Source: Paraphysomonas bandaiensis (Eukaryota; Protista; Chrysophyceae). Taken from it: DNA of 64,000 bases. A program made the position numbers and the translations under genes. The notes below the pieces were generated by a model. That model was given only the letters and a program-made list of their open reading frames with translations. It made no database searches and was not told the origin of the DNA. The DNA is taken from positions 124,001 to 188,000 of the forward strand of contig CBFFRP010000281.1 in the NCBI GenBank assembly GCA_965644295.1, in the 5' to 3' direction. Positions 44,066 to 56,909 of the stretch are shown here, piece by piece. Position 1 is the stretch's first letter. Each line of letters begins with the position of its first letter.

Positions 44066-46248
44066 ATCGTATGTGTGTGTATGAGATCCGCTCCCTTGCT
44101 CTGACCATGTATTGTGATGTGTGGCTGGGTGACTTCCACAACTGACATGTATTTGTCTTGATTTTTTGAGACGAATTTTGTGATGCAATTTTGACACATG
44201 ACACAAATTTGTTTAATTGTCAAAATTGTCTACATAAATTTGCGACGCATATTGTGACGGACTTTGTAACACGATACAAAAAAAAATACGACAATTGTGG
44301 AAGTAATTCATTGAAATGTTTAATTAAGTTATGTTGGATATGAAGAGTAAAGTGCGTAGTAAAGTTTACTCACTTTCACTCTATCTGACAAATAATATCG
44401 TAGCATTGTGAAATAAGGGCCTGTGATTTGCTAAGAAAATCGTAGTACGAAATATGAAAGATGCAGTACAAAGCATGTTTCGCTGTCGTACGATCGTAGT
44501 GTGATAAGTTCCGTCGTATTTTTTTTTGTGTCGTGTCACAAAGTCCGTCACAAAAAAACGACACAAAAGTTGTGGCAGTCATCAACACGTGCACGGGACG
44601 AAGTGAGCTACAGCAAACGGGAGTGGTGGTATATCCGTGATGTACATGTGCACCCCGTATATAGAAACCAGTGCGTGTCCAATGAGAATAGCGGGCTGAC
44701 TGTTTGATAGGTGGAGGTGGTAGGAGAATATGTTGCGATACGGTATCTGCCTTAAAGGTAGTAAAACAGCTGGCGTCACTGAAAGAAGCGCAGGCGCGTG
44801 AGAAGACTGAAACAGTTAGAGTAAAGTGGCATCTGAAGGCCAGTAAGGGGGTAGTGTAGTGTGTACAACATGAGCTAAAGAGGTTTTCATCTGAGTGGTG
44901 ATGGAGTGCAAACATATAGACTGAGTTCGGGGGAGAGGAGCCAAATTGAGGCAGGACCCGCCATTGTGATGCTACCATGCCATGTAGCGTGGTGCTGGGC
45001 TATATTTCAGATCAGAGAATAGAGAATTAGTTCTATATATAGCATATATCGAGATATATTATTCAACCTAGTCAATTCTTAGTCATACTATTGTCGGTGT
45101 AAAAACCTAGTCAAAGCAACAAATGATTCAACCTAGCCAATTATAGTATTAAATCTAGTCATGAATTATTGTACTCGCATATAGCTACGCGTTACAGAAG
45201 CATGAGGTCATAGCAGGTGAAAGAATTTGAATGGACTTGGTGTCTATAAAGGTAGAAAAAAACATAAGTGAGTTATGTTTTCTTCCCTATAACTAATACA
45301 GCATATTATGCGTTGCTTGTTTTTGTGTGTTTTGGTATGTGCATATATATAGGGGTGAAGGGTGCACCATATTGACAGCGTAACTAATCACCAAGTTTGA
45401 TTATCTAGTGAGTGGTGCACCTCTACCTCTGTACACATTGCTTATTTCAGCGCTTTCCTACTCGGGTTCTCACTGCATATTCTATTGTTACTTCCAACAG
45501 CGTTCATAATAGCAGCACCCAGCGCATTTCATTCAGGGTTTGGGTCACGTGCTTATTAGGATTTTGTGCATTATATCATTCGACTCAGTTGCACTAGCAG
45601 AGTTAAAGCGTGACGTACATAAATATGATGATGATAACGATGCCAACGACAATAAGAAGCCTCGCGCAATTACAATTTAATACATTCATCATCACAATAT
45701 GTCATTTATGTGCGAGATTAGATATATTGAAAGTCTTATTAATAGCAATAGGCGTTAAAATCTGCACCAACTAGGTAGCTAGTGAATAGATAACTCACAG
45801 TTGCTATACCCTCCTCGGAATTTTTATGTGGTCAGGACACAGTAGCTGTAGCTATTCACTCATATTCAAATTCATGTTATCTCAACTACCAATCATTTTA
45901 ATACGATCATATATAGGCACAATCGTAAACAGCCAATTTCAGTTTTCACTACTACTATTCATCTCTAGTTAACATTTAATGTAATACTGTAATTCTTCAA
46001 GAAGCGGTTGTAAAGCAGAAGCTTGAGCCGCTGCTGTTTATAACAAGATAAAATCATATAACTTATAGTCGTTTCCCAAAACAAGACATCTAATACCAAA
46101 GAGAAAAACATATAAAGCGAGGAATATAAAACGATATATCATATCATACGAGAAAAATAGTGATTCCAGAATACAAAAAAAAATCGTATAAATGGTACAA
46201 ACATAAAATATTAGGAATCATCAGCAATATCCCAAGAGTATAGAGAGT

Positions 46249-47310: not shown

Positions 47311-49356
47311 ATCGTATGTGTGTGTATGAGATCCGCTCCCCTGCTCTGACCATGTAGATATGAAGTGAAGTTGTATGTTAGATATGAAGAGTTTGGTGTG
47401 TGGATATGAATGCCCCATTCCACATATTCTGACAAATAATATCATAGCATTGTGAAATAAGGGTCTGTGATTTGCTGATAATATCGTAGTAGGATATACG
47501 AAAGTTGCAGTACAAGGCATGTTATTCTCAATGTACATATGCTCTATACATACATGTATATGGAACAGATGTACCAATATATACGTACCATATGTACCAT
47601 ATGTACGATCGTAGTGTGATGAGTAGTACTGTAGTTTGATGTGTCCATGTACATGTAGTACTGTACATGTATATACGTGTACAAGTGCATGGGACGAAGT
47701 GGAGTATACCTATAGCTAACGGGAGTGGCGGTATGTCCGTAATGTACATATTCACCCCGTATATAGCAACCAGTGCATGTCCAATGAGAATAGCGGGCTG
47801 ACTGTTTGATAGGTGGAGGTGGTAGGAGAATATGTTGCGATACGGTATCTGCCTTAAAGGTAGTAAAACATCTGGCGTCACTGAAAGAAGCGCAGGCGCG
47901 TGAGAAGACTGAAACTGTTAGAGTAAAGTGGCATCTGAAGGCCAGTAAGGGGGTAGTGTAGTGTGTACAACATGAGCTAAAGAGGTTTTCATCTGAGTGG
48001 TGATGGAGTGCAAACATATAGACTGAGTCCGGGGGAGAGGAGCCAAATTGAGGCAGGACCCGCCATTGTGATGCTACCATGCCATGTAGCGTGGTGCTGG
48101 GCTATATTTCAGATCAGAGAATAGAGAATTAGTTCTATATATAGCATATATCGAGATATATTATTCAACCTAGTCAATTCTTAGTCATACTATTGTCGGT
48201 GTAAAAACCTAGTCAAAGCAACAAATGACTCAACCTAGCCAGTTATAGTATTTAACCTAGTCATGAATTATTGTACTCGCATATAGCTACGCGTTACAGA
48301 AGCATGAGGTCATAGCAGGTGAAAGAATTTGAATGGGCTTGGTGTCTATAAAGTAGAAAAAAACATAAGTGAGTTATGTTTCCTTCCCTATAACTAATAC
48401 AGCATATTATGCGTTGCTTGTTTTTGTGTGTTTTGGTATGTGCATATATATAGGGGTGAAGGGTGCACCATATTGACAGCGTAACTAATCACCAAGTTTG
48501 ATTATCTAGTGAGTGGTGCACCTCTACCTCTGTACACATTGCTTATTTCAGCGCTTTCCTACTCGGGTTCTCACTGCATATTCTATTGTTACTTCCAACA
48601 GCGTTCATAATAGCAGCACCCAGCGCATTTCATTCAGGGTTTGGGTCACGTGCTTATTAGGATTTTGTGCATTATATCATTCGACTCAGTTGCACTAGCA
48701 GAGTTAAAGCGTGACGTACATAAATATGATGATGATAACGATGCCAACGACAATAAGAAGCCTCGCGCAATTACAATTTAATACAATATGTCATTTATGT
48801 GCGAGATTATATATATTGAAAGTCTTATTAATAGCAATAGGCGTTAAAATCTGCACCAACTTAGTAGCTAGTGAATAGATATCTCGCAGTTGCTATACCC
48901 TCCTCGTAATTCTTATGTGGTCAGGACACAGTAGCTGTAGTTATTCACTCATATTCAAATTCATGTTATCTCAACTACCAATCATTTTAATACGATCATA
49001 TATAGGCACAATCGTAAACAGCCAATTTCAGTTTTCACTACTACTATTCATCTCTAGTTAACATTAAATGTAATACTGTTAAGAACTACTCCATTCTTCA
49101 AAAAGCGGTTGTAAAGCAGAAGCTTGAGCCGCTGCTGTTTATAACAAGATAAAATCATATAACTTATAGTTGTTTCCCAAAACAAGACATCTAATACCAA
49201 AGAGAAACACATATAAAACGAGGAATATAAAACGATATATCATATCATACGAGAAAAATAGCGATTCTAAAATACAAAAACAATCGTATAAATGGTACAA
49301 ACATAACTTGATAATATATTAAGAATCATCAGCAATATCCCAAGAGTATAGAGAGT

Positions 49357-50418: not shown

Positions 50419-53002
50419 ATCGTATGTGTGTGTATGAGATCCGCTCCCCTGCTCTGACCATGTAGATATGAAGTGAAGTTGTATGTTAGATATGAAGAGT
50501 TTGGTGTGTGGATATGAATGCCCCATTCCACATATTCTGACAAATAATATCATAGCATTGTGAAATAAGGGTCTGTGATTTGCTAATAAAATCAAGTACG
50601 ATATATGGAAAGTTGCAGTACAATGCATGTTCAGCCGTAGTACGATTGAGTGTAGGGCCCGCACCGCAGGCAGATCTCGCACCCTTGATTTTACACAATA
50701 GCCGCACAGTTGGTGCGCCCATAGTGTGATCCAATTGATTGGTGTGATTGTAGGATGATAGGCTGTGCACATACATATCATCACAGTACCGCGCCTAACA
50801 TGCATCGAGTATATATATATATATGGCGAGATAGCCATATGCAGCACATAAACATTAATGAATGCTTGAATGCTTGGTAATAACAACATGTTCCTATCAT
50901 CTTATTTCATGAACTGTGAGATGAGATATGCAGTTTGTAGACAAAGTTTACTATAAATAAGGCTGTATATATAGTAATGGTAAGGGGCTGTATATTATGG
51001 TATGGTATGGTATGATATGATATGGATAGGGTGGTGTACAGTGTATGATATTGTGGGATGATGTATACATGATTTATACTATATAGTAAAGAAGATGCTG
51101 CACGATGTGGTGGATTAATATTATTATATATCACTGTTGGTCCTCAGTTTGTCTAGATTCATCCAATTGCTTCTTTTATTTTTCGTATGATAGGCTAAAT
51201 ACCTAAAATGCAGGAATGTCATACACTGGAGCGATATTTATGACGGACAGGCATACGCAGTAAAACACACATGAATGCCAGGTAAATGCATGCTCCCCTC
51301 ATCTTATTTACAGTGTCAGATATGCAGGCGGATGACCAGTGATACAGGTGAAGGAATAGAAGGCTTTATATCATGATATGATATGGATTGGATGGTATAA
51401 ACTATGATGAATGTACTACGTTGTGTGATAGTATATGATTTGATTGTACATGATATGAGATGCTGAATGGTGTAATGTTTATACTTACCGGTGCAAGAGG
51501 GATGCCTAAGCGGCACAAGCGCCCGGTTGCCCCTGTTCTTTCTTACAGTAGTGAAGAGGTACCATGTTATGTAATGATATTCAGTATGGCTGTATGTGAT
51601 AAATTTTTAAACGATGTGTCATATAATATAATATTGTGTAATGCTAAGCCGTACGAAAGAAATGGCTGTGTGATATGACTGTATATGATAAAATGCTGAA
51701 CGCTGTGGCGGTTTATTATGTTGTTGTATGCTCTGTTAATAATGGTACGATGTATTACAAGTGCTAAGAAATCATTAATTATAAGAGTACAGTATAAAAG
51801 TTGATGGAGTGATTATAAATGAATACATATAGGCATTTTACAGATTTCTAACACCAGACTGAACTTTTCTTTTCTTTGACCTAGGAATAATGTTACCATC
51901 GCTGTCCCTTCCTGCACTCATTGCATCATATATACTGTTAATGTATTTCTTAGAGGCTTTCTTTTTTGGGTGAAACTTTTCGTTATTTTCCTGACCAAAT
52001 AAATCAACAATAACACGCATTTCAACCTCTTCAGCTAGGCATTTTAAATTAGCCTTCCATTCTCTGTCTGTAGGAAGTAGACTGACTTGCCATACAGGGT
52101 TTTGGCTCAGCAAGAAACCCTCCTTCGTAATACCACATGCTCACTTATCATCAGCACTTATATAGTTAGGCACCGTGGTGCGGGCTTCAGGGTACGGTAC
52201 CTTCCACATTTTACAGAAAGTGTGAAGGGGATGTTCGAGTGGAGTGGGGAGGAGGGTAGTGAGGTGGAGTATACCTATAGTACAGCAACGGGGGTGATGA
52301 TACGTCCGTAATATGCGTATACACCCCATATAGAAAAACCAGTGCGTGCCCAATGAAAATGGTGGGCTGGCTGCTTAATAGATGGTGGGCCGGTGGAGTT
52401 GAGAGTGTTTGAGCTGATATGCATAGAAAAGTCCGTTGATTAGGGTTAACGTTGATATAGGGCTCGTGTGGATGCTATTTACTGGAGCATTTTTAGGACT
52501 TGAGGGGATTGGTAGGAAAGAGTAGTGATTGGAGTCCAGGGTCTGAGATAGTACATACCTTCTTCGAATAAGGTGGTAGGAGAGTATGTAGTGATTGATA
52601 ATGGGGAAATGAGATGCGGTATCTATCTAAGAGGCTAAGAGATAAGGTAAAAGAGATGGCGTCACTGCAGAACGGCAGGCACGTAATAAAGCTGAAACAG
52701 TTAGAGTAAATTGGCATCTTAAGGCAGGTAATGGGAATGTAGTGTGTACAACATGAGCTAAAGAGGTTTTCATCTTAGTGTGGATGGAGTACAAACAGAG
52801 ACTGTGTCCGGGGGAAAGGAGACAACCATGGAAACAACAGAGCCATGGAGCGGGGTGCTAGCAGAAAGGTGTAACTTTTTGGGTTATATTTCAGACCAGA
52901 GAACAGAGAATTAGTTCTATATATAGCATATATCAAGTACCAGTACATCGTTGATGGGATGTCATTGATGGTATTCCAGTTCCTGGCAATTGTAGTGACC
53001 AT

Positions 53003-53782
53003 CAGGGATAGGGAACAATATATTGCAATATATTGTAAAATATATTGATTGGTGGACTGGTCAAATATTCCATCAATAGTGTTTCTGTTAAAAGAGCTCA
53101 CAATACTATTGCAATACATTGCAATCAATATTATGATAGTCATATTTGAGAAGAATCTTAACTGTAGGGTGCAAAATGGATATAAATAACCGAGAAATTG
53201 ATTACAACATTACAAAGGATAATGAAGCTGATGTTGACAATGCGACTAAAAATCTTCAGTCAGCTCAAAAAATTAAGAAACGTACAGATCCACGAGTCAT
53301 TAACGGTTGCCTGGCCCTGGTATGTACTTCCAATACATGGAAACGTCTGTTCAGCACAGCTAAACATATTATATCAGTGTTGCGCAAAAGTATCCATCCT
53401 ACTTAATATGCTGTTGTTTTAGAAAGCTATTCGGATACTAGCATATTTCAATTAATTCTGTGGATGAATATTGTGATGTTGACCTCACCGATGATGGCTC
53501 AGAGGATGAGGACGAGGTGGATTTTTAGTAGCTATAAGCAGCAGTTGGTTTGGTTGTCATGTGATCTTAATGACTAATACTAAAAATGAAATCTATGGAT
53601 GTGTTTACCTACTGAGTAGTCATACTAATATATTGCAATACATTGACAATATATTGCAATACATTGACAATATATTGCAATATATTGTAATTGTATTGTA
53701 GGACCGGTTTAAAAATTCCAACAATACTATTGATGGAACGCTATCTAACAATAGTATTGCAATATATTGTTCCCTATCCCTG
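53003..53782 (+). mobile_element. Non-autonomous hAT element A (780 bp) with a transposase C-terminal dimerization-domain remnant
   Basis: 28-bp TIR CAGGGATAGGGAACAATATATTGCAATA, ATATTGCAAT subterminal repeats, and TSNTWKRLFSTAKHIISVLRKSIHP resembling the hAT S-x-x-x-ER-x-FS motif. Confidence 0.88.
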
Positions 53783-54162
53783 CTCATCACTATGCATGAC
53801 TTTTATATATGCAATTCGCGCAGATTCTAGTAGGAGCATGTGTACCTTCCCATTATTACCTAACAAAGGTTACGCGGGGATTCTCGTGACCATTCATGAC
53901 TCAGTATAGGTCTAGTGTGACATGACCACCTCCCCCCTCCTCTAGAATGCGCGGGGTTTCTCGTAATCTCATATAGGCTATGCAGGTATAGTGTAGATCT
54001 AGCTAGAGCTTTCTTGATGACAACACACGAATAATACGCTGAGATTTTTATTAATAATCTATACGTTACTTAGCTTAGTCAACACTAACACTTCACTAGG
54101 GTACGCTCTCAGAATGGGGCAAAAATAAACTACTAAAACGAAACACATTACTAAAATAAATG

Positions 54163-55269
54163 CTATATCATACCCATTCTCAGAAGACTAGCCCTCAACT
54201 CTGTTATCTCCTTTTCCTTCTCAGCAAGTATGCTATCCTTCTCTGCCAGTTTGCTATCCTTCTCTGCCAGTTTGCTATCCTTCTCTGCCAGTTTGCTATC
54301 CTTCTCTGCAAGGGTGCTATGCAAACGTTCAATGGTTCGCTCCTGTTCCCGCTGTTTCTCCAATGCATCAAAAAATGACGTTATCTTACCAGCTATATAA
54401 CTATCAAACATAGAATAAGATGCTTGCATTTTCTCTTCTGTAATTGTTCCAGATAAATTCGGAAATATGGCACTGAATAGATATTCCACAACCACCTTGG
54501 AATTAAATGTGGCTTTGTGATTCATACGAAACATCAGTGGTTCAGCCAACTCAATATCAATGCCGGACATCAAATCAGCTCCTTTAGACTTCGCACATGC
54601 AAATATCCATGTGTATCCATCCGTGTAAGCCCCCCACACATCTTCAAATGAACCTTTCAATCGATTATTTTCCACACTCACACTAAGCTGTGCATAGAAC
54701 TGATATATTTCATTATTTTCATATGAATCAAATATTGATTCTGATGATATCAGCTTATGCTTCACTTCTATCACTGATGTGATTACACCATCTGGTTTCG
54801 ATGGTCTTTGATAAGACGTCACAAATTCCACAGGTCCGTTGGCAGTCTTCGACTCATTTGACAACTGCATTTCATGATGCACATATGCAGAAACATCTGC
54901 AATATCTACTTTGCCACCATCATAATCGTCATCATCGTCGAATCGTATTGAAATTGCGGCACCCTCAGATTTAACTTTATCAAAAGTTGCGACCAGCGAT
55001 AGCAATTCATACACTAGAAAGTACATTGTTTTCTCATTTCGTTTGACTACACAACTATCAAATCTAATCTCCAAAGGAATAAAGCGATTCATAAAATAAT
55101 CAAATGCGTTATTATCTAACTGTACACGCGGCGATAGCGATGGATGACATATCCGAACATGCGGAAATATGTTTGAAAATACAATCGAAGATCGAAATTG
55201 GGAGAAGCCACCACAGTGACCCTTTCCAGATTCTCTACTCCCAGAGGATTGGGTCTCAATATCATCCAT
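54163..55269 (-). CDS. PD-(D/E)xK restriction-endonuclease-fold protein with C-terminal heptad-repeat coiled coil
   Basis: Intact 368-aa ORF with motifs IAD...VIEVK...YQFYAQL...WGAYTDGYTWIF and an (LAEKDSK)n tail. Possible 43-nt 5'UTR intron at 55295-55337. Confidence 0.72.
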   Translation of the reverse strand: MDDIETQSSGSRESGKGHCGGFSQFRSSIVFSNIFPHVRICHPSLSPRVQLDNNAFDYFMNRFIPLEIRFDSCVVKRNEKTMYFLVYELLSLVATFDKVKSEGAAISIRFDDDDDYDGGKVDIADVSAYVHHEMQLSNESKTANGPVEFVTSYQRPSKPDGVITSVIEVKHKLISSESIFDSYENNEIYQFYAQLSVSVENNRLKGSFEDVWGAYTDGYTWIFACAKSKGADLMSGIDIELAEPLMFRMNHKATFNSKVVVEYLFSAIFPNLSGTITEEKMQASYSMFDSYIAGKITSFFDALEKQREQERTIERLHSTLAEKDSKLAEKDSKLAEKDSKLAEKDSILAEKEKEITELRASLLRMGMI

Positions 55270-56179
55270 ACTATTAAGTTGTTAGTTCTTATATCTGTCA
55301 AGAGAATGAACGACAGCATCAGAGACTACTGGCATACCCTGATGGCACCCAATAAAATGCCCATTTTAGACCCATGGAATATAATATCCCCATTTTCTAG
55401 ACCTCAAAAACCCGATTTAAAAAATTTCCGTAAAAAAGGGACACATCATTATTATGAGGATCATATACAGCAGTGTGTACCAGCCACCATAATACACACA
55501 CCATATCCACCTTTTCACAGTCATATTCTACAAAATGGCTTCATACAACATAATCACACTCGGTTACCAATAGAGCATGCTATTATGGATGATGCCCCAT
55601 ACTGACAGCGTAACTAATCACTGCATGCGGCCCTCTAGTGTGTGCGGCTGAGTGTTGCGACCGCACACCTCTACCTATGTACACATTGCTTAGTTCAGCG
55701 CTTCCCGACCCGGGTTCTCACTGAATATTCAACGCTAAATACCGTGTGATAATGATGTAGCTAGTTGGGTTCAGTAGCTAGCAAATAACAAGAGGATCCC
55801 AACTTGCTTCTTAGATTGTAATTGCTTTCCTATCAAATTCAGTGTTATGATGAGTGTGAGCCCCTTAGATTAACAAGGCACATATGAGAGATCAATTACT
55901 CTAAAAGATGTGATAATAACAAAGTTGAGATTGTGAAATTTATTGCCGGATACGTTGATAAACCGTCGAGAAGTGTGTATTGATTATTGCCCCATTCCGA
56001 GGGCGTGGCCATAGTGTAGGCTGGCTGGTGCTCCACCTAAAACACCGAGATATAGCACTGATTCTACTACCCACCCACCCGTGTACCAACGTAGCTGACC
56101 ACATAGATCACGTGCAGATTCTGTTGTTCCCCCCAACCTGTGTTAACCTTTGCTGAGATTACGCGGGATTTCTCATCAC

Positions 56180-56589
56180 CAGGGAGAGGGAACAATATAT
56201 TGCAATATATTGTAAAATATATTGATTGGTGGACTGGTCAAATATTCCATCAATAGTGTTTCTGTTAAAAGAGCTCATAATACTATTGCAATACATTGCA
56301 ATCAATATTATGATAGTCATATTTGAGAAGAGTCTTAACTGTAGGGTGCAAAATGGATATAAATAACCGAGAAATTGATTACATCATTACAAAGGATATG
56401 ACTAATACTAAAAATGAAATCTACGGATGTGTTTACCTACTGAGTAGTCATACTAATATATTGCAATACATTGACAATATATTGCAATATATTGTAATTG
56501 TATTGTAGGACCGGTTAAAAAAATCCATCAATAGTATTGATGGAACACTATCTAACAATAGTATTGCAATGTATTGTTCCCTATCCCTG
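56180..56589 (+). mobile_element. Non-autonomous hAT element B (410 bp), an internally deleted relative of A in the same orientation
   Basis: Same termini. Colinear with A except for a roughly 349-bp deletion, one missing 21-bp repeat and about 10 substitutions. Confidence 0.9.
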
Positions 56590-56909
56590 GTGACCATTAA
56601 TGGCCCATTAATGCAATTACCATAATCGGTTAACTCGCCCTGATCCCGGTGATATATAAATTAATGATTTCATTAATGATCTGTTTTCAACATGTTTAAA
56701 ACTTTCATTATTATGCAGAGGGCTGTATATTAGCGAAAGGGATTTTAGTAATGAGCTGTTTTCGACATGTTTAAAATTTACATTATTATGCGGAGGGCTA
56801 TAGGGAGGTCTAAGCAACCACATTGAGGAACAAACAATAATCTAACAAACAGAATAATACTCAATACAAAGAACAGCGGCCGCAAAGGAATTATATAAAT
56901 ATCATGAAT

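Follow-up and report, generated by a model that had tools for sequence, protein, structure and literature searches.

A gene-bearing block between twin hAT-like elements in Paraphysomonas bandaiensis, probably moved as a macrotransposon

How does a cargo lying between two copies of a small transposon come to look circularly permuted, with two ends that rejoin into a repeat unit? This question is raised by a locus in the stretch of 64,000 nucleotides of Paraphysomonas bandaiensis DNA analysed here and referred to below as the window (contig CBFFRP010000281.1, positions 124,001 to 188,000). The first-pass annotation had proposed that the cargo ends were once contiguous, as a circle or as a tandem unit opened at the target-site duplication, and that a cluster of repeats near the joint could be an origin-like or protein-binding array. 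The window contains a Taxilin gene and a gene for the largest subunit of RNA polymerase, has a low density of ORFs and matched no family in an Rfam scan. The composite and its immediate flanks occupy positions 52911-56642, with E denoting the transposon, R the repeat divided between the two cargo ends and S the recipient repeat:

52911-52994, no strand: S repeat, left part, the recipient of the composite; about 85% identity to more than 20 other loci
52995-53002, plus: outer 8-bp target-site duplication GTGACCAT, left copy; identical to 56590-56597 and fitting nTnnnnAn
53003-53782, plus: E1, a 780-bp non-autonomous hAT-like element with both termini present, start CAGGGATAGGGAAC
53783-53790, plus: inner 8-bp duplication CTCATCAC, left copy; contig C298 has a single copy at the corresponding position of its intact R
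53791-54121, plus: repeat R, right 331 bp (R positions 193-523, end GGGGCA); 88-99% identity at more than 40 loci, where it lies directly 3' of the left part of R
54122-55987, no strand: internal region between the two R copies, 1866 bp; 98.5-99% identity in C298 and C461
54163-55269, minus: intact 368-aa ORF whose C-terminus is a heptad-repeat (LAEKDSK) coiled coil
55583-55789, plus: fragment (207 bp) of a second R-like repeat, start TGCCCCATAC; 84-87% identity to stretches near R copies
55988-56171, plus: repeat R, left 184 bp (R positions 1-184), start TGCCCCATTCCG
56172-56179, plus: inner 8-bp duplication CTCATCAC, right copy
56180-56589, plus: E2, 410 bp, an internally deleted version of the hAT-like element E1, with both termini
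56590-56597, plus: outer 8-bp target-site duplication GTGACCAT, right copy
56598-56642, no strand: S repeat, right part
53870-53901, plus: intact internal copy of a 32-nt sub-repeat resembling the joint
53791-56171: the cargo, made up of the right part of R, the internal region and the left part of R

We found that the two octamers flanking the elements are swapped. E1 is preceded by GTGACCAT and followed by CTCATCAC, E2 has the same flanks in the reverse order, and neither element has a duplication of its own. The inner octamer is present once at the corresponding position of R, and E1 and E2 would therefore descend from one insertion into R. The 3.6-kb block of E1, cargo and E2 (53003-56589) is bounded by the second 8-bp duplication, GTGACCAT, within S. 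Its outer flanks are two parts of one S repeat in the proper order and orientation, and these parts are contiguous in other, paralogous S copies apart from a 5-nt indel near that point; the block was therefore inserted as a unit. An allelic empty site for the composite was not found in the assembly. S ends in CCAGGCCCTG and has variable internal duplications in its other copies; it could be a small hAT-type element in its own right. Immediately to the left of the composite, positions 52647-52937 share about 78% identity with 44761-45053 and 47863-48155, suggesting a local repeat or a small gene family.

The element E belongs to a large family, with 930 first-look candidates in the genome when E1 was used as the query. 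Ordinary copies carry their own 8-bp duplication, perfect at 28 of 29 and matching at 7 of 8 positions in the other one. Their strand-symmetrised target sites show T at position 2 and A at position 7 in 42 of 56 cases (75%); both octamers of the composite, CTCATCAC and GTGACCAT, fit this consensus. The short terminal inverted repeats consist of CAGGGATAGGGAAC and its complement at both ends, giving CAGGG...CCCTG, and these termini resemble the CAGGG start of Ac. The 8-bp duplications, the target consensus and the termini together are hAT behaviour, and on these sequence features E is classified as hAT-like; no transposase remnant was detected by Pfam in the short ORFs of E1. E2 corresponds to E1 minus about 370 bp from the middle, with a deletion joint at about 56398 that is unique among the candidates scored, and the two otherwise differ by 11 substitutions. 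Ordinary family members are 89-94% identical to E1.

The joint itself was examined by bringing the cargo end (56159-56179) to its start (53791-53801), which gives a 32-mer that matches the intact internal sub-repeat at 26 of 32 positions (17/21 on the left side and 9/11 on the right). Among 500 shuffled junctions compared with the cargo, the best score was 22 and the mean 17.4, and the score of the right-hand 11-mer alone was equalled in 2 of 2000 shuffles. The uninterrupted junction, which the annotation had suggested searching for in the assembly, was present as an exact copy at C298:687109-687142, complete with CTCATCAC. A pattern search of the whole genome returned 21 exact uninterrupted joints, of which only the C298 copy has the octamer CTCATCAC; the remaining 20 loci are collinear and carry variant octamers such as CTCATAAC or CTCATAAT. 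Former contiguity of the cargo ends, at the outset an inference, is now an observation, seen directly in intact copies elsewhere in the genome.

These copies belong to a dispersed repeat. Placing 55988-56179 before 53791-54121 rebuilds R as a unit of 523 bp in which the CTCATCAC site occupies positions 185-192, and in a search of its own genome the last 184 bp and the first 331 bp of the cargo adjoin, in that order, at more than 40 loci. Removal of E and one octamer restores an R that is collinear with 17 R copies and gap-free at the joint. The cargo is thus the inside of an R-internal-R unit, both R copies of which are cut at the CTCATCAC site by E copies in the same orientation, and it appears permuted because both were cut at the same site. 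The proposal of a circle or tandem unit opened at the target-site duplication was half right, in that the joint lies within a direct terminal repeat present on both sides, but a circle is not required, and none was seen. The closest relative free of E, in C298, is collinear with the cargo and continues through the joint into the remainder of R.

The related motifs noted around the joint were borne out as a set of six copies of about 21 nt, each matching at 13 or more of 21 positions, in the rebuilt repeat, against an expectation of 0.17, with starts near 56108, 56159 (the joint), 53814, 53870, 53947 and 54034. The idea of an origin-like array found no support, the motifs being sub-repeats within R that were found in all 17 aligned R copies. 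Their conservation (0.92-0.98, with an R mean of 0.93 over the 17 copies) is slightly better than that of the rest of R, and regulatory protein binding by these sub-repeats is possible. The outer target GTGACCAT and its flanks (52985-53002 with 56598-56609) resemble the R sub-repeat at 53879-53898, which contains the octamer GTGACCAT, at about 15 of 20 positions; the likeness of the octamer could be due to chance (about 7% for the octamer alone) or to a target preference of E.

R looks like an LTR-like terminal direct repeat, having hallmarks of an LTR without the full set of features of that class. Like LTR retrotransposons and their solo LTRs, R has TG...CA termini (start TGCCCCATTCCG, end AGAATGGGGCA), 5-bp duplications, many solo copies, neighbours in the same orientation and one near-identical pair. 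Among 12 full solo copies, 4 have perfect 5-bp duplications and 2 more match at 4 of 5 positions, with a chance expectation for a perfect duplication of about 1 in 1000 per copy and flanks that are otherwise unrelated. The 5' terminus has 200 matches genome-wide at three or fewer mismatches, and neighbours within 13 kb form at least 12 pairs in the same orientation versus 2 in opposite orientation; these pair statistics rest on coordinates, and the pairs at C288, C128, C200, C457 and C378 were judged from coordinates only. In C298 the order is R (partial, at the contig end), internal region and R (whole), and the two R copies show 1 difference in 324 positions, the other R copies being 83-95% identical to the rebuilt R. 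Unlike LTR retrotransposons, R lacks an adjacent PBS-like or PPT-like tract, whichever way it is read, and could be tied to neither gag nor pol; the internal ORF contains no such domain. R also has a terminal inverted repeat of about 19-28 nt, which looks long for an LTR. No match to the R terminus was obtained in a metagenome scan.

Two candidate links between R and a retrotransposon class were rejected. A copia-type Gag lies 370 bp from an R copy (L017), but at that locus a nested element, which brings a primer site of its own, TGGTAGCGG, truncates R; for an integrase inside or near R pairs (C378 and C65), the coincidence is one that chance would produce, and the strands are incompatible. 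The copia-type element, which has a Gag with a zinc knuckle and the TGGTAGCGG primer site, is apparently nested at R position 97 (L017:1932-3335), and another R copy (L018, near 1939) stops at position 91, almost the same point. Relatives of the second R-like repeat, the start of which, TGCCCCATAC, is like the R terminus, lie head-to-head beside R in C133 and about 0.75 kb from R in C395, and further matches to 55583-55789 were located near R copies in C128 and C338.

Between the two parts of R, the 1.87-kb internal region carries the 368-aa ORF, which each of the three cargo copies preserves intact. Outside R there are two decayed paralogues, in C68 and C89, and in C68 the homology to the ORF begins within about 5 nt of an R end. 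A word-index protein search of public data returned three relatives, all unnamed, the other matches sharing only the LAEKDS tail. Pfam and NCBIfam gave only coiled-coil noise and no Rep-like or other replication protein, all scores in a protein atlas were below 0.9 and serve as leads only, and an AlphaFold2 model built on a 4-sequence alignment was unusable (pLDDT 44). The identity of the product as a PD-(D/E)xK nuclease was considered but found no support, there being no match in Pfam or NCBIfam and a profile comparison with PDDEXK_2 aligning only the C-terminal heptad tail; there is a conserved D...EVK pattern, which proves nothing for a nuclease. The LAEKDSK heptads (54163-54330, minus strand, with a DNA period of 21 bp) are nearly identical to those at the C-termini of unrelated public proteins. 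Proteins sharing this tail carry PDDEXK_2 or PF27881 domains, and their remainder does not align.

The composite is present at two sites in the genome, and only the window copy is complete. At the second site (C461:50245-52616), the same cargo, at 98.5% identity, has the same two inner joints. Its left E abuts unrelated DNA at the outer end (flank CCGCATTG) and is cut off after position 232; the right E runs only to about position 427, and the right terminus and a second CCGCATTG are absent. The same inner joints, with the left E against unrelated DNA, are counted as evidence of mobility. E/R joints occur only in the window and C461: an E inside an otherwise whole R was not found in the assembly, nor was a two-E donor locus collinear with the cargo, and a metagenome scan with the E/R joint gave no match. 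The non-permuted donor and the hAT excision footprint that the annotation had anticipated were not found in this assembly, the R copies showing no footprint. In C298, the right R is free of E and the contig ends in the left R, 8 nt downstream of the CTCATCAC site. The last bases of this contig (L052:9495-9505) include five, CGGCG, that match neither R nor E, and at this key site the contig break could be masking an E copy, a rearrangement or a footprint.

Comparison of the copies gave some indication of their history. The three cargo copies form a star, with 10, about 17 and 12 private changes, and at all five C298-private sites amenable to polarisation the derived state is that of C298; hence there is no shared branch uniting the two composites. 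E1 and E2 have in common a 27-nt subterminal deletion, a C-to-T change and two neighbouring A-to-T changes, none of which occurs in the C461 pair or in 29 other copies; the C461 pair has two other shared private changes. Private changes that group the elements within a composite thus amount to five substitutions and one indel, versus none that group them by position. This likeness reflects either gene conversion between the paired elements or the separate building of each composite from one E. Over its 410 bp, E2 shows 8 private substitutions, in addition to the private 370-bp deletion, and E1 has 5 in 780 bp.

The data are probably best explained by E1 and E2 having moved the intervening DNA as a natural hAT macrotransposon. 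The arrangement that is diagnostic of such a transposon was found here, namely bounding E copies without duplications of their own and outer junctions that share one, GTGACCAT. By this account, one E would have inserted in one R copy and generated the CTCATCAC duplication, and the insertion would then have been copied to the other R by LTR regeneration during retrotransposition or by unequal exchange or gene conversion between the two R copies, which are almost identical; the retrotransposition route is without support because neither a PBS or PPT nor a gag or pol gene could be linked to R. A hAT transposase would subsequently have treated the outermost ends, left in the upstream E and right in the downstream E, as a pair and moved everything in between, making the GTGACCAT duplication here, with a second insertion at C461, and separate later internal deletions would have reduced the E copies. 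Several points count against macrotransposition. Neither an E in a whole R nor an excision footprint is present in the assembly, the private changes within each pair require gene conversion or separate origins, and the 8 private substitutions of E2 exceed the prediction from the 0.4% branch of the cargo. Together with the 370-bp deletion, these substitutions might be the trace of error-prone gap repair.

Some of these points would be accommodated if E and the cargo spread through a circular or tandem intermediate with one E (a 1-LTR-type circle or a multimer) that re-entered by dimer macrotransposition or at a resident E. Every new composite would in this case be reconstituted with one E in duplicate, which would explain both why kinship is closest within E pairs and why a chromosomal two-E donor is absent; we nevertheless regard this route as rather unlikely. 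An event with no macrotransposition at all, in which a circle comprising the internal region with a single R and a single E (a 1-LTR circle hit by E, for instance) recombined homologously with a resident E at GTGACCAT in S, would give exactly the swapped duplications and the permuted cargo, needs no two-E chromosomal donor of the kind that was not found, and would have had many resident targets among the 930 first-look candidates. However, E1 and E2 would in that case be a resident and an incoming element, yet they share private changes absent from 29 others in a family whose ordinary members are 89-94% identical to E1, and since the C461 pair shares different private changes, the coincidence would be needed twice; such integration therefore appears improbable. 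A donor with a single E could also be imagined, in which sister-copy ends of one E, lying in one R, inserted at an unreplicated site and the re-replicated flanks were joined by recombination between R copies. Composite insertions arising from alternative Ac transposition and re-replication, with an 8-bp duplication and homologously fused flanks, sometimes fused by repeat recombination, are documented (PMC4270019), and both E copies would start identical, in keeping with the similarity within pairs. C298 would allow such a donor, since its right R is free of E and the contig breaks off in the left R at 8 nt from the E site, but the left R cannot be read past the contig end. The Ac insertions resemble the present composite in having transposon ends and an 8-bp duplication outside and fused flanking donor DNA inside, but differ in using the reversed ends of two elements, not one, and in containing a point where two re-replicated flanks meet; here none can be seen because the cargo is collinear with C298 throughout. 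In addition, the private changes of the two composites are mutually exclusive, so that a single linear donor does not explain both, and we give this scheme only a small chance.

Three other explanations carry far less weight. Independent insertion of two E copies at the same octamer and in the same orientation in both R copies is conceivable in that the site fits the E target consensus, but the consensus is weak (two positions at 75%), and the identical site, the identical orientation and the shared private E variants make a double event very unlikely. An autonomous circular replicon, present or former, with the motif cluster as its origin would account for ends that close up and for a motif repeated six times; the joint and all six motifs, however, belong to a dispersed repeat, R, whose terminus has about 200 matches and which shows 5-bp duplications, and with neither a replication protein nor an RNA family to point to, the cargo is most improbable as such a replicon. 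An assembly artefact, a loop through the abundant E repeat, might be suspected because E is highly repeated and the C298 contig breaks near the E site, but the 370-bp deletion and 11 substitutions separating E1 from E2 indicate two physical copies, and C461 has the same composite with different deletions, so that an artefact is scarcely credible.

Macrotransposition by hAT elements, our preferred reading, has precedents in maize. At the White Cap locus, the Tam3L macrotransposon has bounding elements without duplications of their own and outer junctions that share one (10.1101/082677), and Ac/Ds pairs move intervening DNA (PMC3260210). The present composite, so read, shares with these systems two hAT elements in direct orientation that move the DNA between them and an outer 8-bp duplication held in common. 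Unlike in maize, the bounding E copies lie at the identical site of two copies of a terminal repeat, the inner duplication is shared as well, and the cargo is a permuted LTR-type unit; moreover, the block is 3.6 kb, versus tens of kb in maize, the host is a unicellular eukaryote, and the donor locus was not found in the assembly. Our literature search yielded no description of this arrangement. In bacterial composite transposons of the Tn5 and Tn10 type, two copies of an insertion element likewise bracket and mobilise unrelated DNA, but the enzyme family and the domain of the host differ, and the likeness is architectural only. In our best reading, the locus represents a known mechanism in a new and tidy form, with both ends provided by twins of a single insertion into a duplicated terminal repeat.

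If so, the composite would provide a clean, natural, non-plant example of hAT elements moving a gene-bearing block, with the swapped duplications recording both the first insertion and the later move of the composite. It would also suggest a simple route from one small transposon to a cargo-carrying pair, namely landing in a terminal repeat that is present twice. For genome annotation, a cargo that appears circularly permuted between transposon copies can signal a split terminal repeat, not a circular replicon.
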